From sequence record ON287370.1: a stretch of DNA of 64,000 nt. One strand, 5' to 3'. The notes beneath the pieces are model-generated. The model saw only the letters and a program-made list of their open reading frames with translations. It searched no databases and had not been told where the DNA came from. The position numbers and the translations under genes were made by a program. Shown here one piece after another: positions 5,340-25,041 of the stretch; positions within the stretch are counted from its first letter, which is position 1, and the number at the start of each line of letters is the position of its first letter.

Positions 5340-5420
5340 TTATTATGGTATGGAGTTAGGAATCCTTTGCTTTAAAGCCTGTAAAGTTTAGAATCTCTAT
5401 TTTTGAAAAGGAGCCTGCTA

Positions 5421-8400
5421 ATGGCAGAGCAAATTAAGATTAACAAAAAGTGTATTAACGATCCGTTATACACACCTGTTGAGCGTTTCTTAAAGGAACG
5501 TATCAAACGCCTTGAGGTTGAAGGACCTGAGGACGAGTTAGCTCTCGCTAAAGAGCGTTACACTGGACTTGTTGCTGGTGACTTAGTTATTGAGAATCCA
5601 GTAGCATTTCCAGATGGTATTACTCGCGTTTGCTTTACTGCGCGCAAAACCGGTTTTGCACGTGTTGACGTCGACATCACTCGTGTACAGATGAAAGATA
5701 TCCTGGAAGACTTCGCCGTTCCTATGATCGAGATCGAAGACCTGGATAACTTGAAAGCTTATGTTAAAGCTAATAAAGTTGATCATGCACTGTTATGGTG
5801 TAAGTGGTTGAACAACTATGGTGTATTGGTTTCTCAAGAAGAAGCTAAGACTATCTCTGGTCCAATGGCTGCTTTTGGTGAACTGTTCTTTAGTGAATAT
5901 GTCACTGAACGTGAATCTCTGACTTTCATTGATTACGACACCCTGGAATCAGGTACTGTTAAAATCACTGATGCGTCTTTCGGTACTGGTACTTATCCGC
6001 TGTTTATTTATGAACTGGTTCTGGATGAAGCTAATGTCCCTGGAATCACGTCTAACCTGCCAGAGTCCATTACTACTCAACGTGGTAAAGACTTCAGCAT
6101 CCCAAACACTTACTGGTTCAACACCACGATCGACATTACCCATGAAGCTCAGATCGAGATCAGTACGGGTTCTGGTTACACTATTCCTAAACGTTCTGAA
6201 GACGGTAACTTTATTCTGGGTGAAACCATTTATGGTTCTGCTGAGAAAGAAGTTCACGATGAGATCTTTGTCCGTGTTACCTATATGTGGCAAAACCGTC
6301 CCGTTAAGAAAACGTTTAAGATCAATGTAATTATCGAGAAGGATAATGAACTTGACCTGACCTTTGAAATTGATCCCCCTACAGTTACAGCTCCTTCTGG
6401 TTCTGATGTAATTGTTAAGATCAAAGCTTTCTACAAAGGTAAAGAAGTTAAGATCACTGCACCACCTTCCCAGATGCTCCAGCAAGGTAACTTTGGTCCT
6501 CTGAAATTCACAGGTCATGATACTGATGGTTCTATGATCTATGAAGGTCATTTGAGCACCAACTTCCCTAATACTGTTGAACAAGTAGGTGGGTTGTATA
6601 CTGCTGAGTTTACTTATAACGAAGGTGATGTAACATCTAAAGCTCCGGCTTATGTCAACGTTATCCTGACTCGTCCAGAAACTGCACCTAAGTTTGAGAT
6701 TCGTAGTTTCCCGGCAGTTATTCGTGGTTATAAAAATGATAAAGGTCTTCTCACTGTAGGTGCGTTCTATAATAACGAACCTATTTCACCAACTGATCTT
6801 CAGATCAAGACGGGTGTTAAAGGTGATAAAGGTCTTATTGAATACAACAGTGTGGATCAGCTCGGTGTTAATTATACACTGATCAAAGATGCCAACAAGC
6901 CTGGCCAAGAAATCCAAGATGTTTATGATCAAAGATTTGCTTGGATCGCACCAACTGGTGTACGATATACGATTACTCGTCAAGTGACCGTAATCGTTGC
7001 CCAGGTCTCTACTGTTGAAGTAGTTCCGCTTTATCCTAATCCGATAGAGGTTAAGAAATACCAGTTTGGTGGTTATCCATTCAAACTGTTAGTTAACGGC
7101 GCTGATGTTACTGGTGGTATCAGCGGATACCAATTTGAAGATCCTGGTGAGTACATTACTCATAAGAAAGGAAGCGACGTTCAGTGGATCGTAACTAAAA
7201 CCCCAGGTGCTGATGAAGAATCCACTGTAACTAAAGTACCGTTCAAATTCCGTTACACTGTTGATGGTGTTTGGCGTGACTTTACTTTCGAACAGAACTT
7301 CAGAGTTCTCCCTTGGAATCCAGATACAGGTGAAGGTGGTAACACTGATACGGTAGCTGTTCCGGCAAATGTTAAGATCGAAGGTCTGTCAGATTCAACC
7401 GGTTACTTTGAGTTTCAGGTATATCACTTAGCTGATGACATCACCGACCGCGCTGTAGTCATGAAAGATAAACTGATTACCCCTAAAGGTATCAGATTTG
7501 ATTCTTTCTCTTACATCCCGGAAACTAACGTTATCCGTGCCAACTACACTAAACTGGACCCAACTACCGAACCTGGTAAAGTTTATATCCAACGTCCTGG
7601 TGTAGATGATCCTAAGACTGGTGATATTGCGATTGTAAGCATCACTACTGATGTCAAACAGTCTCGTGTACTGGTACTGAGCGATTACGACAAAGACACC
7701 ACTGTGGAAGTTGCAGGCTCTCCTGAGCTGGCACATATCACACTGATGTTCGCAGGTAAAGTAGTCCCACTGACTGATGTTAACCTTTCCTACAAACGTC
7801 TTGATGAAACTGACATTCGTTTTGTTGATATCAAAGATGACGGGATCGAAGTAGTCAACAACATTTGGGAATACATTGGTGAAACCCGTCAGTCTGGTGT
7901 TGATCTTGAATACACCTATACCGACCCTCTAGATGGTAACAAAACCAAAGTACGCTTTACATTACCTGTCTTCACTGTTTATCCAGAGATGCGTTTAGAG
8001 AATGCTCCGGCAACTATCGATGCGGCTATCTGGGATACCGGTACTTTACCTTACAACATCATTGCTGGTAAAACTAACTGGAACGGTGCAGTAACAAGTA
8101 TTACGCCAATTGGTACAAGTAAGTACATTGCTTTCAATGTCTTTAACTGGGAAGTTATCTGGGCTGAGAAAGAAGCAACAACAATCACCGTGCCATTAGA
8201 AATCAAATGGACTGTAGGGCAAGCTAAAAATCGTAAGTTCATAACTGAAGTTACTTTCAATTTGGCGGCCTGGGACCAGATTACTTTTGGTGGTCAGTTG
8301 GATACTAAATCCATCACCAAAGATTCTCGCGTTGAAGGTAGCATTACTGGTAACTTTGTTTACAAAGGCAAGCCAGCAGATGACGACGTTGTGCTCGATA

Positions 8401-11400
8401 AAGCAATGTCTACTATTCCAGAAACATTCATCATGGGCGTTAGTGCTCCTGTAGAGAATAAAGGTGTTGTTGTGGGTTATACTACCACTCGTGGTGGTAA
8501 ATACCTGATGACACTGATCTATCGTCATGTTCCATCTAACTTGACAATGTCCTTTGATATTCCAACTGATATCGCTTGGCCTCACGAGTTGAACCTTGTT
8601 AATATCACTAAGAGTATCTCTGGTGTTTGGGAATCCGAGCAGACTATCGATCTGGTTTATAACTTCGATGGCATTCCGCTGACTCTGAACGATCCTAAAC
8701 TTAAATTGACTGCAACCTCTGGTACAGGTGAACCTGTTGAGTTGGTTAAAGTTAATGATGAGTCTCTGACTATCAAGTTGGCTAAAGGCGGTGAACAGGA
8801 TACTGATTACGACTATGAATTCAAGATTCATGTTGAGTATACTGATCCGACCGGTAAGCTTTGGACTAACGATAACACAGTACCTGTTAAGATTCACATC
8901 CCTGGTGTTAAGATCGGTGCAAACCCTTCATTTAACGTTAAGGTGTGGGAGCGCGGTGTTGTCGGCATTACTCTGGTTGATGACCAAGGTAGAAAGGTCC
9001 CAATTGAGAAGTTAACTCCTCGCGGTACTAACCCATACATCACGTTCACTGAACCTGATAACTGGTATGTTACTAGCGGTAGTCAAACTAACTCTATTAC
9101 CACTACTCTGCGTTTGAGTGCACAGTACTCCATGGGTGGGAATACCTATACCCTTGATACTGAAAGCACCTTTACAATCGCTAAGTACGACGGTAAGAAA
9201 TTGGTAATTACCGAAGGCCCTAAAGAACTATCCGGTAAAGCTGGTACTCCTGGTGTAATGAAGTTCCGCTTCACTTATGCTGGTGATCCTGCTAAGAACC
9301 TGACTGTAGATCTTGCTAAGAGTACCATACCTAAGAACATCACTCTGGGTGAAATTACTCCAGATGGTGACTTGCCGTATACCTTACTGGGTCAAGCTAC
9401 CGATACATTAACAATTACATTTGTCAGAGAAAATGCAACCAACCCACCGGTTGTTAATGATGACTATGTAACAACCACAGTTAAAGTAACCACGACTTCT
9501 TCTGATGAAGTATTTACTGTTGAGTCCAAGACTCCAGCAATCACGATTCCTTGGATGGAAACTGGTACGATTGTATTGGCCTTGAAATATGGCGAATATC
9601 CAATCCTCGGTAATACTCCAGGTCTGAAGTACTCGTTAGTCGATAATGGTAAACCTCATGGCATCCGTATTGTTGGCGGTACCGCTGATGGTGTTATTAT
9701 CCAGGCAACTCGCTCTAACGTTAGTGAAGCATTAACTGTTTATCCTGAAGACATCAAAGTCACTTATGAAGTTGGCGCACCTACTCCTAAAGAAGGAACC
9801 ATTTCTTCTAAAGTGAGTATTCAGATGGGTAAAGTTGGTATCACTAATAATGATCCAATTAAAGGTAAGATTTGGGATCTGGGTTCCTTCGGTCAGGGAA
9901 TCAAGATGGGCGATAAAGTTTTAAGTCCTATCCAGGGCTATAAAACCACTCAACCTGAAAATGAATGGATTGAATTTATCGCACCACGTGGTTGGGAAAT
10001 CATCAACGCTGAGAAAACTCCAAGTACCAAGACAGTTGGTATGCAGGTTCTCTACAAAGTAGATGAAGTAGAAGAAGTTCAAGTATTGGATTTTGATGCT
10101 TCGTTTGAAATTCAAGGAAGTGATGATCCTACCCGTTTCAAATGCACAGTTTCGCCTTCTAATCTTGAAGGTGCAGTAGATGTAGAATCTAAACTGAAAG
10201 TTCGCCCTATCTATAAAGGCAAGCAAGTAGGTGCTGCAGCAACCTTTAAACCAGAGTTAAGTACTTTCCCTAAATCACTCAAGTACGTTAGTCACTCAAT
10301 GGCTGGTGTTGATTTTGAGTTAGTCTTTGAAGGTGTGGAAGCTGGTCTGGGTGAAATGGAACTGGTGTTCTGGTCTCCAGCAGCAGGTACTGATCCAGCA
10401 CCACGTGATGTTTGGAAAGGTAAAGTTCCTACCAAGATCATGGGTGAGTTGGGTGTCGAAATTGCTGATCGTGATAACTTGCTGATTGGTAAGGATGGTG
10501 ATACTGGGGAATACAAACTCCAGATTCTGTTTGGTGGGATTCCTATCGATGCTAAACAGGAAATTGCTAACGGCGCTCTGAAAATCACGGTTGAGAAAGG
10601 TGAGGGTAGTTCTCCTAACGCAGGAGTCCTTACTGTTACCGACTGGAATGCTGAAAGCTTTAACTACTCACTGAAAGGTGTTGTTGCTCCAGGTCGTGAA
10701 GTGACTGTTTCTGATTTCATGAACATCACTTATACTTACGGTGGAAATAACTTTACACGTCGTGTAGAGATTCCTGAAAAGTATACCTCGGCGCCAGTAG
10801 CTATTGTTCCGGTTACCCCTAAAGCTTGCAAGATGTTTGAAACCAGTCAAATCGGTATCACATCAGCAAAATGTGGTGATTTGAACTTGTTGACTCCTAG
10901 TTTACCGTCACCAGCAGAATCTGGTTGGATGAACTGTGAACTGGATGAAGAACAACCTAATGGCTACATTACTGTATCTGTTAAAAACTTCACCGTAGTA
11001 AATGCTGATGTAACTGCCAAGTCGCTTACCCTGAAAATGATCTATAACGGTATCTACCGTAACTGGACATGGAAAGGTGAAGCAGAAGTGGTCTTCAACA
11101 TCGCCCCTTGGGATCAGAAGACATTCATTGCTCATTTCATGCGTGGTAATCCTTCCAAACCAATCGCTGGTGATCGGATTGCCTTGGCATTAGAAATGCC
11201 TATGAATGATGAATCTATCCTGTTTGAAACACAAACCATCTTTAAAGATAGAGTTAGTTTCAACGATATGGACACACTCGATTACCTAGACACTGATTTG
11301 AAAGGTGTATTGGAATTGAATAAATCCAGTCCTCTTGGGAGTACTGGTGATAGTGATAACAGAAGGCGGTATTTCGGTCAAGCTGTTGGTCCATATGAGG

Positions 11401-14400
11401 GTGAGATCAAATTAGTCTTCAGGGTTCCAAACTCTCCTAAACCTGGTGTGGAGAACCTGGACTGGACTGCATTGTATCTTGACTGTAAATTTATTTACAA
11501 ACCACTTTTGATTACAGGTATTAACAATAACCTGAAAGGTGGTAACGGTGACAAAGGGACATTGCCATTAACGGTTAAACTCAACGATAAGAATATTCCT
11601 ATCAATGACGCTAACTTGAAATACACCATGGTCCCAGATGACATCATTAAAGTAACTGGTAGCACCACAACCGGTTATACTTATGAAGTCATTACACCTC
11701 TAGATGCTGAATTAGGTAAACTCGAAATCAAATTCTCGCTTGAGTATAAAGATCCTGCAACTGGGTTTACCCATAAAGGTGAATTCACTCAACCATTTGA
11801 AATCGTTAAGCCTGCCGATTATCCAGTCATCACACCAATTCGTGTTTCTGTTGCGCCATTTAACAGGGTAGGTGGATCGACTATATTCAAGATTACCGTT
11901 AGTGGTGTTGATGTAGTCAGTCAATGTAAACCTATTAGTATCACTCCTGTTAATAGTGCTGATGAAGGTGTCCTCGTTCTTGCTGGTGATGAAGCAAATG
12001 ACAATGCTTGGATGTGGTGTACCGATTACCATATAGGGAATCCTCCTTCCGCTGAGATAAAAACTACGTGGGTGATTGAGGTTCCATTCCGTGGCGGTAC
12101 TATACAAGTACCCGATGTTGTGCTTCCTACTTTGGTCGCTAGTTCAACTTCACACGCTGTCTGGATTCAAGGGACAGGTGCACCAAACCCATTCCCTCTG
12201 GGTGATGGTTACGAAGATGAAATTAGATTCAAGATTACCAACCGTGGTTTACCAACCACTAAAGTAACCCTTGATGAAGCAGCCGGTAGTTATGGTCCTT
12301 ATTTCGAGGTCATATCTGTTGAGCCTGATGGCGATGAGATGGTCTTGAAGTATAAAGGTAAATCTTCATTCTTCGCTAAGTTCAATTTCTATTGGAAAGT
12401 CGAAGGTTATGATGGAACCAACGACACTCAACAAAGAGGGGTTGTGCAGTTAAACGCATACCAAATCCCTTCTATTGAAAGTGTCACTGACCCACTGTCA
12501 TTGAAGATCTTCCAGCAATTCGAATTACCATTTAAAGTAATGGCCGGTACAACTGACATTACTAAACTGTGTACTTGGACTGCTATCGATACTGATTACA
12601 TTGAGATATTCAGACCGATCAATACTCAATTGGGTCCATCTGGTCAGGTTGTTAAAGCTGATACCACCGAAGTTAAGAAGGAAGTAATCTTCACTATTCA
12701 GTCTCCTGCTAGTCATGGTAATTTAACATTGACTCAAAAGGTCAATATTATTATTGCTGCTTGGGACCAAATAGAGTTTTATGGTATTCCCACCACTGGA
12801 TTTGTTAAACAGGATGATGGGTTAGTGGTTCCAATACCTTTCACCAATACCTGGAATGCAGTAATCGTTCAAGCGATGATGATGAATAAGGCACGACCTA
12901 ATGCCGGTGGTGTTTCTAGTCTGTCTGATTTCTTGAAAATTACATCTTCAGATCCAGATGCTGTAACACAAACCAGTCAGCTTTCTGATGGGAATGGCGT
13001 CACATCTAGAATCACACCTAATAAAGCTGGTAAGTTCCCAGGTACTATGGTACTACGGTATAAAGGAAATGCCGCGGAAGCCAGTGTACCTAATGGATAT
13101 CCAGCAGGGACTGAAGGTAAGAACCAAAGTACCATTGATGTGACTTGGTATGTCTTTGAAGACAAAATTACCTTTAGAGAAGGATTTGAGCCGAAACCGC
13201 TGATCATTCCAAATGGTAGTACTGCAGTTATTGATGTTCCTTTCGATGCTGTATGGGGACTCAGACAGGTTATGATCAACTCAACTGCTGAGGTTAACTT
13301 TGTTGGCTTGTCTCACGATACTGGTATAGCTTCCCTATTTGGTCAGAACAACACCACAGGAACTAACCGCTTTAACTGGGATAAGGACAGATACAAAATT
13401 CAACCAGCAAAAATAACTGTCGGTGAAAGTGATGTTACAAGTTACTATACTTTCAACATCCAATGGATTAACCCTATAAATAAGAAGAACTACAGTTTCT
13501 CTTATGACCAGCCAATTATCTTTAAAGGTAAAGAGGGTGCCAAAGATCCAGTGTTGACTGTGACTGATGTTCAAGAAGTTACAACTGACGTCTGGAAGAA
13601 ACAAACTGGTTTACCTTTCAAACTGGCTATTGATGGTGTTAACTATCCTATCGATACTAGCACGGTGACAAGTGTTAAAGTTGCTGATGCTGATAAAGCA
13701 TGGTTGGAAGCAGGTCCTAAACTGACTGATGGTTATCGTGTAATTGATGGTGATCCAGAACCTTCAGTTAAGGAAGGTACTTTCATTCTTACTGTGGTGC
13801 AAGGTCCTCGCACCTGGGAAATTGAACAGAAAGTTAAATTCAATATCTCGGCTTACGATGGTAATTCCCTGAGGATGAATATCAGGTTACCTAACTCCTT
13901 CAATAATGGTGTAGCAATTCCTGTTAATACGAATGCCTTGATTATGTTCGAAGGTACATTCCAAGGAGTGGCTCTCACCAATAACTATAACAAGCTCTCT
14001 TACTGGCCAGCTAAGTCCTCTCAGACTCAGATAGAAGTTTACGGTCAGACCTTCCAACAGATGTACTATCAGTTAAGTGCTAAAGGTATTCTGGATTCTC
14101 AGGATTCTGAACAAGCAACTTACTGTATAGGGTTCAAGGAAAAAGAGAACGATCCAAATGCCAAAGAAGGTGTGGATTATGTTATTCTCACCATTCCTAC
14201 CTACTGCTATAACCCTAACCGGTTCTATCCAGTAACTTGGGACCCAGTGATTGAAGGTATGGCTGGTACCAACCTCAAGTATAAATGGAACTTCACATTG
14301 AGGAGAGGTATTGTAGCCAGCAAGTTAGGAAGTGGTACTAATGCCGCTAGTAGCACCGATATTAAACCGGCTGGGGTACTCAATAGAACAGGGTTTAGTG

Positions 14401-15542
14401 ATAACCAACTTGAATACGCCTTCGCTAGTGAAATTGATGTAGCCACTAAAGAAACTGACATGACCATTATGATCGGTAATACCAGTGACTTTGATACAAT
14501 GGCTGCTAGATTCCCTGTGAAAGCTATTCAGCACACTAATGTCCCATTCCCTACAATCAAAGATCCGCAAACCGAACTCACTGTTCACTACAATGATTCT
14601 GGTGCTGTTCCATTCAAAGTAGATTGGAAAGGTACCGATGTAACAGATCAGATTAGTGCTGTGAGAATCTCTGATAACTCTTATATAGAGATCAAAGATA
14701 AACAATGGCATGTTAAACATGCTGACCCTCAGACTGTCAAAGTGATGCCTACCATTGACGCCGACATCGTTCTTGATAGTGTGACGTTTACCTTGAAACA
14801 ACAGGTGACCTTCACTGTACTGGGGTATAATGGTAAGCAGATCAATGTTGAAGCAGGGTTCGCTCTGTTGATGGTTGATGAAGTAGGTTACCTTGAAATC
14901 AAAGGTGATTATAGTGGTGATCCATTATCAGGTAATGTCATCTTCGATGCAGTTAATAGTGACAATGGTGGAATTGTGACCTTCGGGGCATATGAATTTA
15001 CCACCAATGAATCTATGGTAATCAAGTTGACAGGTAAAGCTCCTGGTGAAGATGGTGTTAGAATCAGAATCAAATCTGTTCATGATACCGGTAACGGCAA
15101 CATCGGTTCTGACTATGTGGATCTGTATCCTAAAGTAACAGTTCTTCCTAAGGAACTGACTCCAGCAGCTCGATTCGAAACTACTGGTGAAGGTAACTAT
15201 TGGGAACCACCTGTATTAGGTCAGGCTGTAATGCTCGGTGACAAACCACTTGCTAACACTGATTCAGATCTGATCATTGAGATCTTGGATTATCCTGACG
15301 TCACCATCAGAACACTTTCCTCAGCAACTGTTGGGTATTCATTCACTAACAATAGTGATACTGAAATTAAACATCAGTTTAAACAGAAGTTCACTTATAA
15401 AGGAAGAAGTGAATATGTTGTAGACATCACGTTAACCCAGTTGCCTTCACCGACAACTCCGTTCGTGACTGATATAACGCAGATTGATGCCGAGTATGGT
15501 AAATCTTACTTGGCACCATTCAAAGTAATTTCTCCTCGTTAA
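5421..15542 (+). CDS. Giant (~3,370 aa) modular fibre/adhesin-like virion protein with tandem Ig-like repeats
   Basis: The ORF track starts at TTG 5403, but AGGAG at 5409 fits ATG 5421 better. At least 8 copies of a module ([W/F]-x4-5-PF-x4-G-x-D-[IV]-T ... W-x-V ... F-x-I-A-x-[WY]-D) alternate with variable domains. Confidence 0.75.
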   Translation: MAEQIKINKKCINDPLYTPVERFLKERIKRLEVEGPEDELALAKERYTGLVAGDLVIENPVAFPDGITRVCFTARKTGFARVDVDITRVQMKDILEDFAVPMIEIEDLDNLKAYVKANKVDHALLWCKWLNNYGVLVSQEEAKTISGPMAAFGELFFSEYVTERESLTFIDYDTLESGTVKITDASFGTGTYPLFIYELVLDEANVPGITSNLPESITTQRGKDFSIPNTYWFNTTIDITHEAQIEISTGSGYTIPKRSEDGNFILGETIYGSAEKEVHDEIFVRVTYMWQNRPVKKTFKINVIIEKDNELDLTFEIDPPTVTAPSGSDVIVKIKAFYKGKEVKITAPPSQMLQQGNFGPLKFTGHDTDGSMIYEGHLSTNFPNTVEQVGGLYTAEFTYNEGDVTSKAPAYVNVILTRPETAPKFEIRSFPAVIRGYKNDKGLLTVGAFYNNEPISPTDLQIKTGVKGDKGLIEYNSVDQLGVNYTLIKDANKPGQEIQDVYDQRFAWIAPTGVRYTITRQVTVIVAQVSTVEVVPLYPNPIEVKKYQFGGYPFKLLVNGADVTGGISGYQFEDPGEYITHKKGSDVQWIVTKTPGADEESTVTKVPFKFRYTVDGVWRDFTFEQNFRVLPWNPDTGEGGNTDTVAVPANVKIEGLSDSTGYFEFQVYHLADDITDRAVVMKDKLITPKGIRFDSFSYIPETNVIRANYTKLDPTTEPGKVYIQRPGVDDPKTGDIAIVSITTDVKQSRVLVLSDYDKDTTVEVAGSPELAHITLMFAGKVVPLTDVNLSYKRLDETDIRFVDIKDDGIEVVNNIWEYIGETRQSGVDLEYTYTDPLDGNKTKVRFTLPVFTVYPEMRLENAPATIDAAIWDTGTLPYNIIAGKTNWNGAVTSITPIGTSKYIAFNVFNWEVIWAEKEATTITVPLEIKWTVGQAKNRKFITEVTFNLAAWDQITFGGQLDTKSITKDSRVEGSITGNFVYKGKPADDDVVLDKAMSTIPETFIMGVSAPVENKGVVVGYTTTRGGKYLMTLIYRHVPSNLTMSFDIPTDIAWPHELNLVNITKSISGVWESEQTIDLVYNFDGIPLTLNDPKLKLTATSGTGEPVELVKVNDESLTIKLAKGGEQDTDYDYEFKIHVEYTDPTGKLWTNDNTVPVKIHIPGVKIGANPSFNVKVWERGVVGITLVDDQGRKVPIEKLTPRGTNPYITFTEPDNWYVTSGSQTNSITTTLRLSAQYSMGGNTYTLDTESTFTIAKYDGKKLVITEGPKELSGKAGTPGVMKFRFTYAGDPAKNLTVDLAKSTIPKNITLGEITPDGDLPYTLLGQATDTLTITFVRENATNPPVVNDDYVTTTVKVTTTSSDEVFTVESKTPAITIPWMETGTIVLALKYGEYPILGNTPGLKYSLVDNGKPHGIRIVGGTADGVIIQATRSNVSEALTVYPEDIKVTYEVGAPTPKEGTISSKVSIQMGKVGITNNDPIKGKIWDLGSFGQGIKMGDKVLSPIQGYKTTQPENEWIEFIAPRGWEIINAEKTPSTKTVGMQVLYKVDEVEEVQVLDFDASFEIQGSDDPTRFKCTVSPSNLEGAVDVESKLKVRPIYKGKQVGAAATFKPELSTFPKSLKYVSHSMAGVDFELVFEGVEAGLGEMELVFWSPAAGTDPAPRDVWKGKVPTKIMGELGVEIADRDNLLIGKDGDTGEYKLQILFGGIPIDAKQEIANGALKITVEKGEGSSPNAGVLTVTDWNAESFNYSLKGVVAPGREVTVSDFMNITYTYGGNNFTRRVEIPEKYTSAPVAIVPVTPKACKMFETSQIGITSAKCGDLNLLTPSLPSPAESGWMNCELDEEQPNGYITVSVKNFTVVNADVTAKSLTLKMIYNGIYRNWTWKGEAEVVFNIAPWDQKTFIAHFMRGNPSKPIAGDRIALALEMPMNDESILFETQTIFKDRVSFNDMDTLDYLDTDLKGVLELNKSSPLGSTGDSDNRRRYFGQAVGPYEGEIKLVFRVPNSPKPGVENLDWTALYLDCKFIYKPLLITGINNNLKGGNGDKGTLPLTVKLNDKNIPINDANLKYTMVPDDIIKVTGSTTTGYTYEVITPLDAELGKLEIKFSLEYKDPATGFTHKGEFTQPFEIVKPADYPVITPIRVSVAPFNRVGGSTIFKITVSGVDVVSQCKPISITPVNSADEGVLVLAGDEANDNAWMWCTDYHIGNPPSAEIKTTWVIEVPFRGGTIQVPDVVLPTLVASSTSHAVWIQGTGAPNPFPLGDGYEDEIRFKITNRGLPTTKVTLDEAAGSYGPYFEVISVEPDGDEMVLKYKGKSSFFAKFNFYWKVEGYDGTNDTQQRGVVQLNAYQIPSIESVTDPLSLKIFQQFELPFKVMAGTTDITKLCTWTAIDTDYIEIFRPINTQLGPSGQVVKADTTEVKKEVIFTIQSPASHGNLTLTQKVNIIIAAWDQIEFYGIPTTGFVKQDDGLVVPIPFTNTWNAVIVQAMMMNKARPNAGGVSSLSDFLKITSSDPDAVTQTSQLSDGNGVTSRITPNKAGKFPGTMVLRYKGNAAEASVPNGYPAGTEGKNQSTIDVTWYVFEDKITFREGFEPKPLIIPNGSTAVIDVPFDAVWGLRQVMINSTAEVNFVGLSHDTGIASLFGQNNTTGTNRFNWDKDRYKIQPAKITVGESDVTSYYTFNIQWINPINKKNYSFSYDQPIIFKGKEGAKDPVLTVTDVQEVTTDVWKKQTGLPFKLAIDGVNYPIDTSTVTSVKVADADKAWLEAGPKLTDGYRVIDGDPEPSVKEGTFILTVVQGPRTWEIEQKVKFNISAYDGNSLRMNIRLPNSFNNGVAIPVNTNALIMFEGTFQGVALTNNYNKLSYWPAKSSQTQIEVYGQTFQQMYYQLSAKGILDSQDSEQATYCIGFKEKENDPNAKEGVDYVILTIPTYCYNPNRFYPVTWDPVIEGMAGTNLKYKWNFTLRRGIVASKLGSGTNAASSTDIKPAGVLNRTGFSDNQLEYAFASEIDVATKETDMTIMIGNTSDFDTMAARFPVKAIQHTNVPFPTIKDPQTELTVHYNDSGAVPFKVDWKGTDVTDQISAVRISDNSYIEIKDKQWHVKHADPQTVKVMPTIDADIVLDSVTFTLKQQVTFTVLGYNGKQINVEAGFALLMVDEVGYLEIKGDYSGDPLSGNVIFDAVNSDNGGIVTFGAYEFTTNESMVIKLTGKAPGEDGVRIRIKSVHDTGNGNIGSDYVDLYPKVTVLPKELTPAARFETTGEGNYWEPPVLGQAVMLGDKPLANTDSDLIIEILDYPDVTIRTLSSATVGYSFTNNSDTEIKHQFKQKFTYKGRSEYVVDITLTQLPSPTTPFVTDITQIDAEYGKSYLAPFKVISPR

Positions 15543-15562
15543 TACTAATAGGGCCAATAACC

Positions 15563-18500
15563 GTGAATAACAAACAGTCATCTGTAGTTCCATTCAAGGT
15601 TAGAAGCGCTCAAACTGGTACTGACATTACTGAGAATATCAAGTTAACGTCTGTTGAATCTAAGGGGACTTCGGTCCCCTTTTTCAAGGCTAATGACAAT
15701 GATACTTTTACAGTGATCAATGCTGATCAAAATGAAGACAAATTGATCGATGCAGTATTTAAGTTTGACGTAACTGACTTAAACAAGACCTACTCCCTGC
15801 AAGCAGAGAGTAAGGTCAATGTGAAGAAGTATGCACCTGGTACTTTTGAAGCAAAAGTACTTACTAATAATGGATTGTTCTTAAATGGTGTTGTAAAACA
15901 ACAGCGGTATTTTGATTACGTGGCTAAATACCAAGGACAGGAATTACCCAATACCGAATTTTTATTTTTATCAGGATCCAATGTATTTAACGGTTATGCT
16001 TCTTTTGATAAAGAAGAAAATCTTCCGGATGGTAAGACTAACCGTGTTTACTACACACCACTGTATGAAGCAAATGGTAACACGATAGACTTTAAAATAC
16101 TTCGCAAAAATGCTTCTGATAGTACGCTGGTAGGTGATGGTAATTGCATTGTCCCAATGAGGGCGATCTTTGCTAAAAACGCATCCGGATCATTAAACGC
16201 ATTTTTCCCTAACACTTCAGATGCTGGTGTGGTGGGACCTCTAAATGCGATTGTGAGAATTTATCCGATCGTTACTTGGAATGGGAATGTGGTTCCTCTT
16301 AATTCTCCGGCTCTAAAAATTGCTAAACTAGATAAAACAACAGTCACCCCAAATCAATCGGGCGCAAGTAAATTCGATATACTTGGGACAACTGAAACTT
16401 ATATCGAGTGCAAGATAACTTCCGTGGAACCAACTCCAGGTAGAAATCCTGGGTTTACATGGAGACTTACGTATGGAAATGTCGACTTAGATTTAAATGG
16501 GTCCAATGTTTTACTTAAAGATGGTATTCTTGACCCCATAGAACTAACCAATCTAAAGCCCTTAAATCCGAATGCCCTGCAAAAATTAACATTCACTGCG
16601 TCTTTATCTAAAACTGCAGAATGGTCGGCATTTTTATCAGTTAGTGGTGCCGTCTTTGCTTCAGGTAGTTTGATTATACGCAGTAAAAATAATTCAGCTA
16701 TTATCTCCAGTGCCGATATCAGTGGGCTCACCCCTGACCAAGTGGGTCGATATATAAAGGAACTAACGACACCGGGGGTTGAATCAATTGTAACTGTATC
16801 TGGGGTAATGGACTGTTACCGCATCCGTGGTTCAGAAAACATGGCTGGTACAACACCCATGGCAATCAAACCTTTGGTCATTGAAATCGCTGAAGGTAAG
16901 TATATTTCTTATGCGATGCCGGCTGAGAAGCTGAATAATACTGGCGATAACTACGTCATCATTGGTATTAAAGAAGAGAACCAAGATAAGTTCTCTGGTG
17001 CTTCTGTAACTAACTTCAAAGCGACCGGTGCTCTTGATAAAGCTTCAGCTCCTAGTCTGAATGCTGATGGTAGTTTTGCCATCAACATCATGGGTAATAA
17101 AAATAACGGTGAGGTTTTAGTTACTGCTGATATCGTTGGCCCTGCGCCTGAAGGTAGAACTTACAAATATAGTAAGACCTTGATGGTTAGTGGTAATGAC
17201 CAAGTTGTTATTACACCTAAAACGGTACCTGTTAAAGTCTGGGATAGCCTAAGTGAAGTTCCATTTACTGTAACTTCTAGCGGTACTGATGTTACTTCTC
17301 AGATTCGTAATCTGAAATTGGTAGCTAACGAATATATCAAAGAAGATCCTGAAAATCCTGGACATTGGGTTGTTGATACAGCCCCTACAGCAGGTGCTTC
17401 TAAATCAACCTTCTTTACATTTGAAGTTAATGTAACGGGTAACTGGAAACCTAAAGTGGCTTATGGTATTTATCAGATCGCTGCTTGGTCTGGTAAAGTT
17501 CTAGAGGTTGAATCTGATGGGATCATAGGGGCCAGCAAATTAAAAGAGACCAGTTACGTAGTTAAACCCAAATATAAGAAAGAACCAATTGCTGATAAAA
17601 TAGAAATTGTTCTTCCTAGTAATGCTGGGTTCACAGTAGTTAAAACAACACCTTCAGAAGACAATACTGAACTTACAGTAACCGTTAAGGCGACTACCAC
17701 CACGGGTAGTAAAGATGTTTATAACTCAATTACCGTCATTAAAGGTATTGGTTATAAACTTAAAAATAGCCAGGGGACTACTGAAAATGTAGATATTGTA
17801 CATCTAGATAGTAAATTATTCTCCAATGAAGACTATTTGGCACTTTATGGTAGCATAGAAAAAGTTGGTGGTCCATATGGGGCTTTAGGTGCATTTGCCG
17901 CTACGTCGGGAGTATCTGAAATTTATGTCTTTATTAATGGTGATAGAATATCCCTAAATGACTATAAATTATCAGCTTATTTCTTAGATAATGGTGCTAA
18001 CATTACTAGTCCATCCATTAAAGCTAATGCGTTTAGTTATATAGGAGGGGAGGACACGACCCTATATGTTAGAATAACTAAACCAAAATTGAACATTACT
18101 GATACGGCTCACCAATATTATTCACCATGGGCGATGATATATGGTGATGGTGGGGTAAATGATCAATATAAATGCGTAACCAAAAATAACTTTTGGGTTA
18201 ACCCGACTACCACAACAGAAACTCCTTTACTAACTTTACATGAACCTAGTGAAGTAAAGCCAGGAGTAGAAAATATTATCAGGTGTAGAGTTTCTAACAG
18301 TGGTACGCTATTAGAAAATATGAACCTAGTAACGGGTAAATTGGTCCCTATCCCTGAAAATTGTATCGATCTTACCAAAGAGTACTCCATCTCTCTTGAC
18401 CCCAATGACAGTAAATACTTGATTATTAAGTTTACTGCAGGAACTATTGGTGGTAATGTCTATGTCAGGGGTGGTGTAAGTGCTAGTGGTGTTTCGGGCA

Positions 18501-20197
18501 TACCTGTATTATCGGATGGTCTGACAATACCCAAACCTACACTTGTTACTAGTTTAATTGATAATGGGTTTAATGGCATTAATGGGGCCGAAACTGAGAT
18601 TAAGTTTAAAGTAACCTCGGTCGATAAACCTATCACTGGCGCCACTGTTAATGGTAACCTGTTTACTCCAGCAGGGACTGTGAATCAAGCCAAGAACTTT
18701 AAAGAGATTGGTGAAGGTGTTTATAGTCTTGTAGTTGTTGGTAAAGGTATCCAAGGGGAAGGTTCTGTTAAGTTCACTCTAACCAGTGGTGAAGTAATAA
18801 GTGAGGTCACATTAACTCCACTTAATGCGACTATCGACTCCAGTAAGTTCAAACTCACTTTTGATCAAACAGAGATCTCAGGTAAGAAAGGCGATCAGAT
18901 TAAAATAACCGGTAAATTGGTAAATGGTGAAACCAACTATAACCTGGATGATTCTGGTGTTGTTTGGTCCTTTGATCCTACCGATGTTGTTGCAATCACT
19001 ATGAGAGATAAAACAGCCATCACGCTGGAGATAAGTCAGGAAATTCCTTATGATAAAACCACGATGGTTAAGATTAAAGCCAATGTGGGTGGGATGACCA
19101 CTGAAGCTCCACTGGATGTTAAAACTCTGGGTGTTCTAGTTGTAACCAAAACTGATCCTACAGTGAGTGTATGGGATAGGAGTGATGTTCCACCACTTAA
19201 GTTTATGTTGGGTGATAAGGATGTAACTGCTACTGTTGACTCTATTAGTTTCGTAGAAACTAATTTGGTTAACCACAATGGACTGAAAGGTGGTTATCAG
19301 ATCATCTCTGATAAAGCAATCCCTCAGACCAAACAGGATGTGGAGTATACCTATAAGTACACTGCTGATTCTGAAGAGGTTAAAGTTACCGTTCCATTTA
19401 CTATCAATAGTTACGATGGTAAAGAGTTGGTAATCACTCATCGGTATGGTGATGTATCTAAAGGACCTAACGGGGAATTTCTAACCTATACTGGTGGATA
19501 TGCTCCGGTTTACTTCTCCGGTAAATTGAAAGGTATCCCGGTTGGTGAGCTTACTGTGACCCAGTTAAGCGGTGCTCAATATGTTAAACCTGACACTACT
19601 CCACTTGGTTATAATAGCACTACTAAAGAAACCACTTACCGATTTAGCGGTAATGCAAGCAATACCGTAGTTAATGGTACGATGTCGCTGAAGGTTAAAA
19701 TTAAGTCAGCCACTGGCGATGTGGAAGGTATTGACTATGTAGTTGACATGATGGGAATCACGGTCATCAAGGATGAAGAAACCCTGTATGCTTCACAACC
19801 TGATCCTTACGTATTTAAAGGTAAGTTTGGTGATGAACAGTTGACTAAGTTAATTGTCTACTATGGTAAGACTCAAGTTCCTTTAACTGACTCTAAACTG
19901 GTTGTTGGTCCCACCAATGACTCTAAAGTTACTGTAGTTGCTAACTCACTCAGTAAGGATTCTCTGAAGTTACAATTCACCAGTGACACAGATGCTGAAA
20001 TACCTAATACTGGATTTAGTATTTCATTGAAATACACCAATCCAAGTAATGTGGTTAAAACAGCGAATGCAAGTATGGTTTATAATCAACTTCCTCGCTA
20101 TCAGCAACTGACTTTAGGTGAAGGTTTCCAGACGACAGGTGAAGGTGATATAGAGACACCAGTAACTCTGAAACAATTCGTACTTAAACCAGAATAA
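15563..20197 (+). CDS. 1,544-aa modular fibre/adhesin-like virion protein
   Basis: GTG start. It carries the same repeat module as the upstream giant (VPFKV...GTDIT; KVWDSLSEVPF...IAAWSG; VWDRSDVPP...INSYDG) plus an invasin/Big_1-like domain. Confidence 0.7.
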   Translation: MNNKQSSVVPFKVRSAQTGTDITENIKLTSVESKGTSVPFFKANDNDTFTVINADQNEDKLIDAVFKFDVTDLNKTYSLQAESKVNVKKYAPGTFEAKVLTNNGLFLNGVVKQQRYFDYVAKYQGQELPNTEFLFLSGSNVFNGYASFDKEENLPDGKTNRVYYTPLYEANGNTIDFKILRKNASDSTLVGDGNCIVPMRAIFAKNASGSLNAFFPNTSDAGVVGPLNAIVRIYPIVTWNGNVVPLNSPALKIAKLDKTTVTPNQSGASKFDILGTTETYIECKITSVEPTPGRNPGFTWRLTYGNVDLDLNGSNVLLKDGILDPIELTNLKPLNPNALQKLTFTASLSKTAEWSAFLSVSGAVFASGSLIIRSKNNSAIISSADISGLTPDQVGRYIKELTTPGVESIVTVSGVMDCYRIRGSENMAGTTPMAIKPLVIEIAEGKYISYAMPAEKLNNTGDNYVIIGIKEENQDKFSGASVTNFKATGALDKASAPSLNADGSFAINIMGNKNNGEVLVTADIVGPAPEGRTYKYSKTLMVSGNDQVVITPKTVPVKVWDSLSEVPFTVTSSGTDVTSQIRNLKLVANEYIKEDPENPGHWVVDTAPTAGASKSTFFTFEVNVTGNWKPKVAYGIYQIAAWSGKVLEVESDGIIGASKLKETSYVVKPKYKKEPIADKIEIVLPSNAGFTVVKTTPSEDNTELTVTVKATTTTGSKDVYNSITVIKGIGYKLKNSQGTTENVDIVHLDSKLFSNEDYLALYGSIEKVGGPYGALGAFAATSGVSEIYVFINGDRISLNDYKLSAYFLDNGANITSPSIKANAFSYIGGEDTTLYVRITKPKLNITDTAHQYYSPWAMIYGDGGVNDQYKCVTKNNFWVNPTTTTETPLLTLHEPSEVKPGVENIIRCRVSNSGTLLENMNLVTGKLVPIPENCIDLTKEYSISLDPNDSKYLIIKFTAGTIGGNVYVRGGVSASGVSGIPVLSDGLTIPKPTLVTSLIDNGFNGINGAETEIKFKVTSVDKPITGATVNGNLFTPAGTVNQAKNFKEIGEGVYSLVVVGKGIQGEGSVKFTLTSGEVISEVTLTPLNATIDSSKFKLTFDQTEISGKKGDQIKITGKLVNGETNYNLDDSGVVWSFDPTDVVAITMRDKTAITLEISQEIPYDKTTMVKIKANVGGMTTEAPLDVKTLGVLVVTKTDPTVSVWDRSDVPPLKFMLGDKDVTATVDSISFVETNLVNHNGLKGGYQIISDKAIPQTKQDVEYTYKYTADSEEVKVTVPFTINSYDGKELVITHRYGDVSKGPNGEFLTYTGGYAPVYFSGKLKGIPVGELTVTQLSGAQYVKPDTTPLGYNSTTKETTYRFSGNASNTVVNGTMSLKVKIKSATGDVEGIDYVVDMMGITVIKDEETLYASQPDPYVFKGKFGDEQLTKLIVYYGKTQVPLTDSKLVVGPTNDSKVTVVANSLSKDSLKLQFTSDTDAEIPNTGFSISLKYTNPSNVVKTANASMVYNQLPRYQQLTLGEGFQTTGEGDIETPVTLKQFVLKPE

Positions 20198-20212
20198 GGA
20201 ATAGTCCTAACC

Positions 20213-23200
20213 ATGAGCACGCTTAAACAAGCTGCACAAGTGGATGGTCAGACTATCAGTAACCTTGATCCTGATATGGTAATCACACTGGACTCTCATG
20301 AGGGAGTCCAGATTTCCTCCAAGACGGAAGATACCATAACTTATAAATTCCTTAAGGAAGTTGATCAAGATACTGAATATAAACTGAACCTGACATTTGT
20401 TTATAAAGATCAGTATAAGACGGTCGTTCCGATGACCTTCCTCAATAAGAAACCTCAGCCTAAGTTTAATCTTAATGCTGAGTGGATCACCAAGGATGAA
20501 GAATTAGTGGGCGCAAGTTCCAATCGCATTTACTTTAAAGTAACTGATGATCAGGGAGTGCCTGTAGAGGGAGTTACGTTAAAAAATCTTAAGGCAGTTG
20601 GAAGTCCAAATACTCCAGATTTAGTTCCGGGGTATAGCGGGATAATTGTAGATACCAAGCCAGATGGGATTTATGCGATTAATATTAATTTAGGGCATTT
20701 ATCCGGTTCATTTAATATTGATATGGTATTATCTAAGGATGGCTTTGATTTTGTAATTCCTAAAAAGAATTACAAAGCTCCAGGCACCCCAGGTAAATTC
20801 ACCTTTACTCCTAACAAGGTATTTGCTACAGATGGTCCAACAGAAATAGAAATATTTGGAACGCAAGATAAATATGCTAGACCGAATTCTCCTCTGCAAG
20901 GAACCTTTGCTAAATTAGAGATTAGTGGTGGTATGGTTGCCGATCTTTCAGGAAAGGTGACTTTAGATGCGGATGGTAAAGGTAAAATAACCATTATTCC
21001 AAATGGTAAATTGGAAGATATTAATATCTATGGGAGTTTCTCTGCCACTCCAGATAACAGACTTTTAAGTGTGGACCATGATATTATTGTAGAGAAGGAT
21101 GCCTTAACTGTTGAGTTATTGACAGATGAAGATCTAGGTTATCTGAAGAAAGCAACTGTTGTTGCTCACGTTCTAAACTCTAAAGGCGAATATCTCCATC
21201 AACCTGGTAAGATCGTAAACTCTACAATAACTTCTGTACCGACTAACGATGTTGTTAGTAATGTTCCTGGTGAATTTACCCAGGGTACCGCAGATACATC
21301 TATTTATACCATGATCGTTGATGTTGGTTATCTCCCAGGTACAGTTACTATTATTCCTGAGCTAACTATCGCTGGTGTTAAATACGATATTGATTCCAAA
21401 CTGGAATTCAAGACAGAAGGTTCTCCAGTTACAGTAAGTAGAGTTGGAGCGGTAATAGATCCGTTCAAGTCTACCATGATGGGAATTTTCTTCACCAGAC
21501 AAGTTAGGATTGATGGTGAGACCTCAATTTCATTTGGTACTACAGTAGTTTCTCAAAAATCAAGTGATGGCTTGAAGATCGATAGACCATACACCTTCTT
21601 AGGTAAAGGTAACGCAACCGGGTATATTTCATCTGAACAACCTAATACTACGCAAACACTCACCTTTAGCGTTTCTGAGGAAATACAGGGTATCCTTTAT
21701 ACCTATGATGACTTAGTGCTTGAAGTGACTGTACGTGATGGTGTCAAGGAAGAGGTTACCGCCACACCTAAAGCAGACCTGGAGATAATGCAGGTTGATC
21801 CTGAGAATACTAATAGAGATCTTCCGTGCTATCTTGAATTTAAACTCGATAATAATGTTAAAGGTCCAGTGACCGATGCAGAACTTGTTTCTGTTAAAAC
21901 CACTAATGTTCCTGAAACAGGATCCGGTATCTTCAGCGTGGGTGAATCTCTGACCAAGGTTGCTGATAACATCTACAGACTAGATATCAAATGTGATAAA
22001 GGTATTGACTCGGCTCTGTTTGATTTAGTGATCAAATCTGGTGAGAAAGAGTTCACTGTTAAGCAATTTAGTGTTAACATCATCAAGCCGCCATTAAGGT
22101 TAGAAGAGTTAGTCCCTATTAGTATGCTTCCACAAGGGGGTAGCGAGGTTGACTTTAAGTTCTCCTTGATGCAGGCAAGCTGGACTGGATTGGGAACTAA
22201 TAACCCGGTTCTCATCTATAATAGTAAATTACAATTTACTTATGATGATTTCACCATATCTGATAATGCCGAATTTGTTAATGAACCAGCTCAGGCGGAT
22301 AAGAACCCTACCATGACAGTCTTTAAACTTAAGTCTAAAGCTGCCGATGGAACAGTTAAGATTACTGGTACGGTTAATGCAGTTAATTCTAAGCTGGGTA
22401 AACAGGGTACTCTTGAAATCAGTCTCCCTATTGGGATAGGGAAGGAATTAACATTAGTTCCAGTTAGTGATCCTATTCTAACACAGGGTGATAACAAAGT
22501 AGTATTTGATCTCAATTACGCTGACGGTGCTCCTGCAACTGGCCTCACCTGTTATTATTATGATTTCTCTGATGGTGAAAAACGCAATAATGGTTATACT
22601 GGTTATTCTCATCTCAAAGAAGATAAAGATAAACCAGGTCGTTACGAGTCCAATATCGCAGTGGGTTGGGCGCAAGCTACATTCACGCCTATTTGGTATA
22701 TGGATGTTGATGGGTTAAGTAGCAAAGTTGTTAGTCAACCATTAACCACTCAAGGTACTGAACCAGAAGTAGTTCAGACTGATAATACCATCACTAATGA
22801 TGATAAACAGTACACTACTTACTTCCAACTAGAAGTTCCGCTAGTTCCAGGACCTCAAAAATATATTCCTGCTGGTAAATGTGAATTAATATCTGTTGAT
22901 AATTCGCTTACTATAATTGGGTCGATTACTCGTGAACCAAGCAATGGTCGTTTCATTATTAAGTGCGAACCTAAAGGTGAAACCGGGATTGCTAATATCA
23001 AAGTCAAGTTTACTTGTACTGAGTTCATGACGACCTATGTGAAAGAAATCGATCTTGTTGTCAATATTAATCCACCGACGCCAGTTCTAACTGATCTTGT
23101 AACGGAATATACTTTTGATCTGTGGGAAGAGAAAGAACTTTCCTATGATGTGAAGAGTGGCGATGTAAGTGTGGCTTCCAGTGTGACTGATATTGTCTGT

Positions 23201-23428
23201 ACTAATAACGATGATATCAAAGATGATTTTGAATTCAGTAAAAATGCTAATGGCAAGTGGGTATTCAAATCTATTAAATCGGATACCTCAGATGTTATCT
23301 CCAAGAAAGCAGAACTGAAATTCATTGTTGTTTATGCCGGAATAACCACCGAACTAACGGCTGAAGTTCAACTGTCTACCAATGTAAATGCAAACCCTAA
23401 ACCAGAGTTTGATGTTGAAATAATCTAA
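20213..23428 (+). CDS. 1,071-aa Ig-like (invasin/Big_1-like) virion protein
   Basis: Repeated V-x-D-x-x-G-x-P-V-x-G ... G-x-Y motifs, plus a C-terminal copy of the shared module (LWEEKELSY...GKWVF). Confidence 0.65.
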   Translation: MSTLKQAAQVDGQTISNLDPDMVITLDSHEGVQISSKTEDTITYKFLKEVDQDTEYKLNLTFVYKDQYKTVVPMTFLNKKPQPKFNLNAEWITKDEELVGASSNRIYFKVTDDQGVPVEGVTLKNLKAVGSPNTPDLVPGYSGIIVDTKPDGIYAININLGHLSGSFNIDMVLSKDGFDFVIPKKNYKAPGTPGKFTFTPNKVFATDGPTEIEIFGTQDKYARPNSPLQGTFAKLEISGGMVADLSGKVTLDADGKGKITIIPNGKLEDINIYGSFSATPDNRLLSVDHDIIVEKDALTVELLTDEDLGYLKKATVVAHVLNSKGEYLHQPGKIVNSTITSVPTNDVVSNVPGEFTQGTADTSIYTMIVDVGYLPGTVTIIPELTIAGVKYDIDSKLEFKTEGSPVTVSRVGAVIDPFKSTMMGIFFTRQVRIDGETSISFGTTVVSQKSSDGLKIDRPYTFLGKGNATGYISSEQPNTTQTLTFSVSEEIQGILYTYDDLVLEVTVRDGVKEEVTATPKADLEIMQVDPENTNRDLPCYLEFKLDNNVKGPVTDAELVSVKTTNVPETGSGIFSVGESLTKVADNIYRLDIKCDKGIDSALFDLVIKSGEKEFTVKQFSVNIIKPPLRLEELVPISMLPQGGSEVDFKFSLMQASWTGLGTNNPVLIYNSKLQFTYDDFTISDNAEFVNEPAQADKNPTMTVFKLKSKAADGTVKITGTVNAVNSKLGKQGTLEISLPIGIGKELTLVPVSDPILTQGDNKVVFDLNYADGAPATGLTCYYYDFSDGEKRNNGYTGYSHLKEDKDKPGRYESNIAVGWAQATFTPIWYMDVDGLSSKVVSQPLTTQGTEPEVVQTDNTITNDDKQYTTYFQLEVPLVPGPQKYIPAGKCELISVDNSLTIIGSITREPSNGRFIIKCEPKGETGIANIKVKFTCTEFMTTYVKEIDLVVNINPPTPVLTDLVTEYTFDLWEEKELSYDVKSGDVSVASSVTDIVCTNNDDIKDDFEFSKNANGKWVFKSIKSDTSDVISKKAELKFIVVYAGITTELTAEVQLSTNVNANPKPEFDVEII

Positions 23429-23433
23429 TAAAA

Positions 23434-23461
23434 CGAACCTTACGGGAAACCGTAAGGTTCG
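23434..23461 (+). terminator. GAAA-tetraloop hairpin terminator
   Basis: CGAACCTTACGG-GAAA-CCGTAAGGTTCG forms a perfect 12-bp stem immediately after the stop codon. Confidence 0.8.
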
Positions 23462-23494: not shown

Positions 23495-23566
23495 ATGAAG
23501 AAGAAAGGTATTAATCATTATAAAGATATTCATACAGAACCACCTGCTGATATATGGAGGAAGTAG
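23495..23566 (+). CDS. 23-aa micro-ORF (MKKKGINHYKDIHTEPPADIWRK), possibly the frameshifted N-terminus of the next gene
   Basis: Read directly from the sequence. It overlaps the start of the 495-aa ORF in another frame across an ATATAT run. Confidence 0.35.
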   Translation: MKKKGINHYKDIHTEPPADIWRK

Positions 23567-25041
23567 TGTCTAAAATAATTAATTTACTAGAAGGGCAAAC
23601 TGGAAAGATAGTATATCGCCCTACATTCAGAAATACCCCTATACCGAATGAAGTGACAATAGACAAAGATAATTCGGTACTTAAAGATGCAATTAACCTG
23701 GGTGAGTGTAAGGCGAATGAAGATGGTGTCACTGGAGAAGTACCCTTCACCGCCAAGGCTAAAGCAGAGTCTGATTTACAAATCGTATTTGCCAGAAAAG
23801 ATGTAAATGGTAATGTGGAAGGAAAGGATATTTCAACCCAAGACCTTACTGTGGATATCGGCGCTTCTGAGTTAACAATAGTAACTGCAGAACCCAACAA
23901 AGTGAAACATTCTTCTGATAATACTTACAAAATAAATATGTCATTGAAGAATGGAGATCAAACAGTAAGTCTGAAAGATCCAACATTAGTTAACACCAGT
24001 TCTGATACCTTCACCATAGTGGGAACTGATGAAAACTCCTTCAGCGTAAAAATGAATGAAAGTAAGATTAATAAAGACCCAGCTGTGTTTTCTACCAACT
24101 TTAATTTTAATCTTAACCTGTATTCATCCAGTATTTCACATACGCTCAATGTCTGCTGGGAACCCGTAATACAGGCTGAGAAACTTATCACCTCGATAGT
24201 TTACGGTGATAAAGGGACCATGCCAATTAAAATTACAAATGGTAAAGGTGAAGACATTACTTCATCTATCACCAACTTAGTTTGCACTAGTGAATACTTA
24301 AAATTTGATGCGCAAGGTTCTTGGGAAGTCATTAAAGAAATAACTAATGACATCACTCATGAAGTAACGTTTAAGTTTGACGTTACCCAGGAAGGTTATA
24401 CTTGGCCAATGACCTTGAAGGTTAGTTTTAATTTACTAGCTAAACCAAAATCAATTAAAGCAAGCCTCTTGAGTGAAGGTTCCAGCATTTCATTGTCTAA
24501 CGGTAACATGAAATTTAAGATGGTTTATGATACGGGTGAGATAGTCACAGATGCGACATACGTATCGAGAACTAATAACTCACCTTCTACATCATTTAGT
24601 AATTTTGGCAGTGGGTTTAAAGCTAGTAATTCTGCCAATGGTGAATACGAAGTAAGTTATACCTCTGGCTATAAATATGGTAGTTCTTCCTGTACTGTAA
24701 CTGTTAAAACTAAATATGGGGAATATGTTGTAACGCTACCATCTATAACTTGCCGCGATCAACCATTCTCAGTTACTGCATCTCCTGTCGTATTGGACAA
24801 GGGGGCTAAGAACTCTAAGTTTATATTTACAGCTAAACAACAGCGATCCATAGGCGGTACACCTGTTGAATTAACTGGTAACTTGGAGTTAATATGGTTA
24901 AGGGGTGCTAATATAGTAAGTGCTCCTTCCGGGTCTGGCCCATGGACTGTTTATCTGGCTGATGACGGTATTGGTAATACTGTTGAAATGAACTTCAACT
25001 TAGGGTCCTTATCTGGAACTGGCTCTATCTATAAAGCATAA
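23554..25041 (+). CDS. 495-aa Ig-like virion protein, last of the fibre cluster
   Basis: Contains the shared module (VYGDKGTMPI...GEDITSSI...GSWEVI) and invasin-like domains. An alternative GTG start at 23566 follows GGAGG. Confidence 0.65.
   Translation: MEEVVSKIINLLEGQTGKIVYRPTFRNTPIPNEVTIDKDNSVLKDAINLGECKANEDGVTGEVPFTAKAKAESDLQIVFARKDVNGNVEGKDISTQDLTVDIGASELTIVTAEPNKVKHSSDNTYKINMSLKNGDQTVSLKDPTLVNTSSDTFTIVGTDENSFSVKMNESKINKDPAVFSTNFNFNLNLYSSSISHTLNVCWEPVIQAEKLITSIVYGDKGTMPIKITNGKGEDITSSITNLVCTSEYLKFDAQGSWEVIKEITNDITHEVTFKFDVTQEGYTWPMTLKVSFNLLAKPKSIKASLLSEGSSISLSNGNMKFKMVYDTGEIVTDATYVSRTNNSPSTSFSNFGSGFKASNSANGEYEVSYTSGYKYGSSSCTVTVKTKYGEYVVTLPSITCRDQPFSVTASPVVLDKGAKNSKFIFTAKQQRSIGGTPVELTGNLELIWLRGANIVSAPSGSGPWTVYLADDGIGNTVEMNFNLGSLSGTGSIYKA

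Follow-up and report, generated by a model that had tools for sequence, protein, structure and literature searches.

A conserved gene split inside a predicted immunoglobulin-like domain of giant proteins in Serratia phage Sureiya and related jumbo phages

The junction between genes 2 and 3 of phage Sureiya

The sequence analysed here is a stretch of 64,000 nucleotides from record ON287370.1, called the window below. It matched the Serratia jumbo phage vB_SmaM-Sureiya (ON287370, 256 kb, genus Petsuvirus) with 100% identity, and a window position is the record position minus 124,000. Three consecutive genes of the window encode very large proteins, all three of which are annotated as hypothetical in the record (Table 1). 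In this study, we analysed the two junctions between these genes, above all junction 2, which separates gene 2 from gene 3. A previous sequence-only reading had described these two genes as lying in the same frame with one TAA between them. We confirmed this arrangement. The TAA at 20195-20197 is followed by a spacer of 15 nt, GGAATAGTCCTAACC (20198-20212), and by the ATG at 20213, with an offset of 0 from the stop. The same reading had reported that the strand TLKQ is present twice with synonymous differences. This was also correct, as the copies read ACT CTG upstream and ACG CTT downstream, each followed by AAA CAA, and differ at third codon positions only. As described below, junction 2 is very probably an ancient, selected gene split inside a small immunoglobulin-like (Ig-like) domain, the two halves of which are translated separately.

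The C-terminal tail of the middle protein (gene 2) and the N-terminal head of the gene 3 protein had been aligned by eye with a single intact domain of the giant protein (gene 1). A formal profile alignment gave a significant match in window 15174-15440. For this, sequences of six phages were used to build a tail profile (upstream proteins) and a head profile (downstream proteins). The tail profile matched residues 3264-3284 of the open reading frame (ORF) 5385-15539 with a conditional E-value of 8.5e-6, and the head profile matched residues 3280-3352 with a conditional E-value of 1.8e-11 (6.7e-9 against all ORFs). On the giant protein, the two matches lie next to each other, with an overlap of five residues (QAVML). 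These results indicate that tail and head together correspond to one domain and that both halves contain its boundary strand. In the 14 junctions compared, 37 of 126 residues were identical between tail and head in the homologous register, against 5-16 when the register was shifted by 1-3 residues; the doubled boundary strand is thus more than chance. The head begins at profile column 1, corresponding to residue 3277-3280 of the intact copy, and only the upstream protein contains the F.T.G.G strand that precedes this point. Judged from the sequence, the head would be an acceptor without a strand that is present in the intact fold, as in donor-strand exchange. The whole Sureiya genome contains just two copies of the junction domain, the split one and the intact one.

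Table 1. Positions of the genes and of the junction features in the window
Feature	Position	Strand	Description
Gene 1, SUREIYA_01560, giant protein	5421..15542	+	3373 aa, predicted Ig-like repeats
Gene 2, SUREIYA_01570, middle protein, putative plug at C-terminus	15563..20197	+	1544 aa
Gene 3, SUREIYA_01580, putative socket at N-terminus	20213..23428	+	1071 aa
Intact, unsplit junction domain near giant protein C-terminus	15174..15440	+	Tail and head profiles abut
Upstream C-terminal tail (putative plug), GEGFQTTGEGDIETPVTLKQFVLKPE	20117..20194	+	First strands of split domain; tail profile E 2e-16
Upstream TLKQ	20165..20176	+	ACT CTG AAA CAA; sequence
TAA with Shine-Dalgarno-like GGA (TAAGGA) and remainder of 15-nt spacer	20195..20212	+	Sequence
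Downstream N-terminal head (putative socket), 78 aa	20213..20446	+	Remainder of split domain; head profile E 5.7e-44
Downstream TLKQ	20219..20230	+	ACG CTT AAA CAA; sequence
12-bp G+C-rich hairpin directly 3' of gene 3	23434..23461		Likely end of transcription unit

Junction 1, between genes 1 and 2 (15542/15563), cuts the next domain, in window 15446-15640. The offset is 2 here, and the spacer contains several stops. The giant protein ends in ...YLAPFKVISPR and the middle protein starts, at a GTG, with NNKQSSVVPFKVRS, so that about eight residues (PFKV) are present on both sides. This domain is intact in pEt-SU and Survivor (...YKLPFKVLSGLDGRDIS...), and the cut was also found in N1M2, SXP01, and L023. 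For the N1M2 gene at this place (N1M2_161; our loci L007/L020), the likely start is a GTG about 200 codons upstream of the annotated one. Its open frame begins at the junction directly after the giant gene, and it matches the Sureiya middle protein from the first residues.

Conservation of the cut among diverged jumbo phages

In at least 10 diverged jumbo phages, with 13-14 junctions among them, the cut falls on one and the same column of the alignment. The set consists of Sureiya/Yubaba/L023 (L023 is a Logan contig), N1M2 (a Klebsiella phage), pEt-SU, Survivor (two junctions), OBP (two), AH04, Kc263 (a Kosakonia phage), SXP01 (a Shewanella phage; two or three), and the IMG/VR genomes L008 and L011. 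IMG/VR gave five loci in all, and a word search with the head gave four proteins; a metagenome scan for further junctions found none. At least 10 phages keep both the motif F.T.G.G....PVTL.Q.V.LP. in the tail and M.TLKQ....G at the start of the head. The stop is TAA at all junctions but one, a Shine-Dalgarno-like (A)GGA follows directly, and the ATG lies 11-33 nt past the stop. The offset of the start from the stop was 0 in 4-5, 1 in 4, and 2 in 5 of the 13-14 junctions. Second stops were present in OBP (TAATAA, and TAA..TAA at its junction 1), L011 (TAATAG), and L008 (TGA..TAA); those of L008 and of OBP junction 1 are in frame. Since the offsets are random and second stops occur, neither readthrough, frameshifting, nor any other frame-dependent fusion is what has been conserved. 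The sequence-only reading had left two reasons for the doubled strand, selection keeping it in both proteins or stop readthrough fusing them. The retention of split, tail motif, and head start in at least 10 diverged jumbo phages supports the former, and the latter found no support as the reason, given the random offset, the second stops, and a GGA and ATG of its own at every junction.

The same junction was present in four DNA runs from four studies, which contained close relatives. The TAA was unchanged in all four, and the vicinity of the junction was free of insertions and deletions. From position 20101 to 20467, the only differences were at third codon positions and at one base of the spacer; the preceding domain (19735-19995) differed by about 10%. 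Both halves of the junction are under purifying selection. In a related contig from run X12, a +1 and a -1 indel three bases apart were found at window 19746-19757 together with clustered substitutions. The two indels make up a compensated frameshift in the variable domain that immediately precedes the tail.

The constraint was strongest on the head. When a 3-kb query was compared with OBP, AH04, Survivor, and pEt-SU, the head was the only stretch with DNA similarity. The first 60 residues of the gene 3 protein were 92% identical to the relative P0008 (L023), and the rest was 0-55% identical. The middle protein gave the same pattern against P0008, with 93% identity over its first 60 residues. 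Head-bearing proteins ranged from about 300 to 3124 aa in length. The conserved head and this size range suggest that the head is a constant adaptor placed before exchangeable distal modules.

An intact copy of the domain was found at about residue 3260-3380 of the giant protein in Sureiya, N1M2, SXP01, pEt-SU, and Survivor. These copies matched the head profile with E-values of 7e-9 to 9e-17, and the tail and head profiles abut on them in all five phages. In OBP, the counterpart of this position (the gp207/206 junction, junction 1) is split. In a tree of the domains, the OBP junction-1 head fell on the branch with the intact copies (support 0.56-0.82), and the heads of the junction-2 type made up the remaining groups. 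In pEt-SU and Survivor, the equivalents of Sureiya genes 1 and 2 form one polypeptide of about 5,100 residues. The domain is thus intact in homologs and paralogs, as expected of gene fission. The sequence-only reading had held that homologs with a sense codon at this TAA would point to a simple recent nonsense mutation. The domain does occur uncut, but elsewhere in the chain. The cut is ancient, and a recent nonsense mutation is refuted by its presence in the relatives and by the TAA in the DNA runs.

Some phages carry further arrangements of these parts. In SXP01, the middle protein is present as two tandem copies that both have a junction-1-type head and a plug-like tail; this indicates that several tails and heads can combine. 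One of these paralogs is an unannotated ORF of 1523 residues (L021, record 178579-183191) between two annotated genes. Survivor junction 3 and SXP01 junction d have in common a distinct tail type (IEG...TVTV.Q) and a distinct head clade (support 0.98). This pairing is consistent with cognate pairs of tail and head. In AH04 (L019) and Kc263 (L022), there is only a giant protein, which lacks an intact junction domain in its interior, and a short head-bearing protein behind it. Recombination between the two copies of the domain appears to have taken out the middle segment in these phages.

Structure prediction and a proposed joint between segments

Database searches gave little information on the proteins. 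Neither Pfam (three proteins) nor PHROGs (all six large proteins of the fibre region, 78-25041) returned a usable match, apart from a borderline YtkA hit in Pfam. A sequence search of the PDB with the chain proteins found nothing useful, and BFVD returned uncharacterised relatives only. The structure models of the chain proteins were all-beta, and Foldseek matched them to titin, filamin, FdeC, and cadherin arrays with E-values of 1e-7 to 1e-6. By these models, the fold is tandem Ig-like, a series of beta-sandwich repeats of about 90-100 residues each.

AlphaFold2 was applied to the hypothetical readthrough chain with X placed at the TAA; no alternative genetic code is claimed. In this fused chain, the tail was modelled with a predicted local distance difference test (pLDDT) score of 86-93 and with strands at model residues 131-134, 140-143, and 146-147, and the domain preceding it scored below 50. 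The head scored above 90, but the strand copy at its N-terminus was disordered, and both this copy and the spacer residues scored below 50. When the head was folded alone, the N-terminal copy formed strands at residues 2-5 and 8-10 with a pLDDT of about 71, and the head again scored above 90. Together, the two models suggest that the head's own strand may be displaced. This fits a head that covers its own open edge until the tail arrives, as weak evidence from shallow alignments.

The reading that we favour, and regard as moderately probable, is that consecutive fibre segments are held together by strand complementation in a non-covalent plug-and-socket joint. The genes from 5421 to 23428 would encode consecutive segments of one very long fibre built like beads on a string, in which the beads are Ig-like domains. 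Each segment would be translated individually from its own ATG behind the TAA and the immediate Shine-Dalgarno-like GGA, an arrangement that fits coupled translation. At junction 2, one beta-sandwich domain of about 95 residues would be divided over two polypeptides. The plug would be the C-terminal ~25 residues of the upstream protein, with the first strands, and the socket the N-terminal ~78 residues of the downstream protein, with the rest of the domain. After translation, the plug would insert in the socket, the domain would be rebuilt, and the segments would be joined end to end with no covalent bond. The boundary strand TL.Q.V.L would be kept in both halves most likely because the open edge is covered by the socket's own copy. 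This copy would later give way to the plug, which brings the same strand together with the missing first one, or the plug would pack beside it.

Several points weigh against such docking. Conservation is lower in the tail than in the head (about 40% against 92% identity in the comparison with L023). The docking model is a single covalent chain based on a shallow alignment of 10 rows, and it is biased to docking of the upstream copy because the row of the intact domain aligns to that copy. Plug and socket are neighbours in the DNA, and their co-variation could come from linkage alone. No proteomic or microscopy evidence for a location in the virion was found in a literature search that did not cover the OBP proteome. 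The published descriptions of N1M2, Kc263, and Sureiya contained nothing on these genes, and we found no precedent for a joint of this kind in the literature on strand complementation in phage fibres.

Alternative readings and known systems

We considered whether the cut could be conserved with the halves never reassembling. The head would then be an adaptor binding elsewhere, the junction a recombination boundary for swaps of distal modules, and the tail with the doubled strand the tolerated leftovers of fission. Such a history would account for a head that alone is conserved at the DNA level between distant phages and for the sharp mosaic breaks past it. It would also suit AH04 and Kc263, where a junction-2-type head comes directly after the giant protein as if the middle segment had recombined out, and SXP01, which has a tail without an adjacent head. 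However, a useless tail should decay, yet F.T.G.G....P.T..Q is (nearly) invariant in all lineages. The tail also has a conserved ending of its own, LP., which is missing from the intact copies, and AlphaFold2 gave it high confidence only in the context of the head. Recombination and docking are moreover compatible with each other. We consider it unlikely that the halves stay apart.

The other alternatives concern how the two halves are expressed, and all are much less probable than the preceding one. Occasional readthrough of the TAA in the Sureiya lineage would yield a functional fused protein of 2,621 residues. Its basis is that the two genes are in frame without another stop in Sureiya, Yubaba, and L023, as is independently the case for junction 2 of Survivor, but in-frame junctions occur at chance frequency (4-5 of 13-14), and other lineages have a second stop or an out-of-frame start. 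The GGA motif and the ATG are conserved, the junction has no conserved downstream structure or terminator-like feature, and the fusion would hold the boundary strand twice and six extra residues within a domain. TAA followed by G is, in addition, an efficient terminator in enterobacteria. Neither a conserved in-frame ORF nor a single leaky stop lacking its own initiation signal, as in programmed readthrough, was found, and nothing supports background readthrough in the in-frame Sureiya lineage; we judge this reading very improbable. Frameshifting was rejected, as there is no conserved frame relation. A ribosome hop from the upstream AAA CAA (K-Q) to the identical downstream codons would skip 54 nt, restore the exact sequence of the intact domain in any frame, and leave ...PVTLKQAAQVDG... 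as junction peptide. Take-off and landing codons are indeed identical in Sureiya, but only there: the landing Gln is missing in N1M2, Survivor junction 3, and SXP01 junction d, and the Gln codons differ in OBP and pEt-SU (CAG against CAA). In the bypassing of T4 gene 60, the stop directly follows the take-off codon, whereas here it lies six codons past the putative take-off. With the conserved GGA and ATG, independent initiation is sufficient, and a hop is extremely improbable. For a recent nonsense mutation or an assembly error that broke one gene, nothing speaks except that the two genes are in frame. The same cut with different spacers in at least 10 phages, the TAA in four independent DNA runs and in Yubaba, and the purifying selection on both halves leave this reading with a negligible probability. 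No terminator-like or strong promoter-like site was found at 20195-20212.

The closest known mechanisms to the proposed plug-and-socket joint are donor-strand exchange in chaperone-usher pili and in type V pili. In the chaperone-usher pili (Fim, Pap), an Ig-like fold without an edge strand is completed in trans by a neighbour to form a stable non-covalent joint, which in the phage is only predicted. The pilus subunits miss the last (G) strand and receive it from an N-terminal extension, whereas the phage domain would miss the first strand and receive it from the C-terminal tail of the preceding protein. The phage joint would also be single and heterotypic, between giant multi-domain proteins, with no homopolymer, periplasmic chaperone, or usher. 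Among the flanking genes scanned, nearly all of which are annotated as hypothetical, none was recognised as a dedicated chaperone, usher, or protease. In the type V pili of Bacteroidia (FimA/Mfa1), the groove of a subunit is at first occupied by its own N-terminal strand, and C-terminal strands of the neighbour take the place of this strand later on, a polarity equal to that of the proposed phage joint. There, a protease removes the N-terminal strand, while no protease or cleavage site is evident in the phage.

Other systems resemble the locus in its gene order or in its history. In the gp34-gp37 chain of T4 and the anchor-branch receptor-binding proteins of Klebsiella phages, consecutive genes also encode consecutive segments, with a conserved docking N-terminus and a variable, exchangeable distal part. 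To our knowledge, the joints of these fibres have not been described as a single domain split over two chains with a doubled boundary strand. The proteins studied here differ from them as monomer-like chains of Ig beads with 1,000-5,000 residues and show no similarity to those fibres. The 'Rosetta stone' pairs of gene fission and fusion are comparable in that the same domain and chain form one polypeptide in pEt-SU and Survivor and two in other genomes. Unlike in such pairs, the cut lies inside a small domain, at the same column in paralogous copies, with about 9 residues kept on both sides. Downstream of the hairpin, a protein of 495 residues (23554-25041) is also beta-rich and repeat-like. 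Since it has no plug or socket motif and lies behind the hairpin and a gap of 125 nt, this mechanism probably does not make it a part of the chain.

A wider version of the joint can be put forward only tentatively. OBP-like jumbo phages would build fibres of about 6,000-8,000 residues from separate segments by chaperone-free donor-strand exchange. Each socket would be self-capped by its own N-terminal copy of the boundary strand until the cognate plug, the C-terminal beta-hairpin of the preceding segment, displaced this cap. Through their different types, plugs and sockets would set the assembly order, and distal modules could be alternative or branched, as in SXP01 and Survivor. If true, this would be a natural split-domain connector that is genetically portable. 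We regard this general scheme as possible but considerably less probable than the joint itself.

For the annotation of this phage group, the results mean that these are real separate genes, neither pseudogenes nor products of readthrough. With binding of plug and socket as predicted, the joint would be a compact natural connector, consisting of a ~25-residue tail and a ~78-residue domain, and plug and socket pairs could be used as protein-joining tags. It would explain why gene boundaries lie inside domains and why a strand is doubled in these giant-protein operons. Strand complementation, known from bacterial pili, would be extended to virion fibres. Very long fibres would then be assembled from separately translated pieces, and their distal pieces would be swapped by recombination at a constant adaptor.

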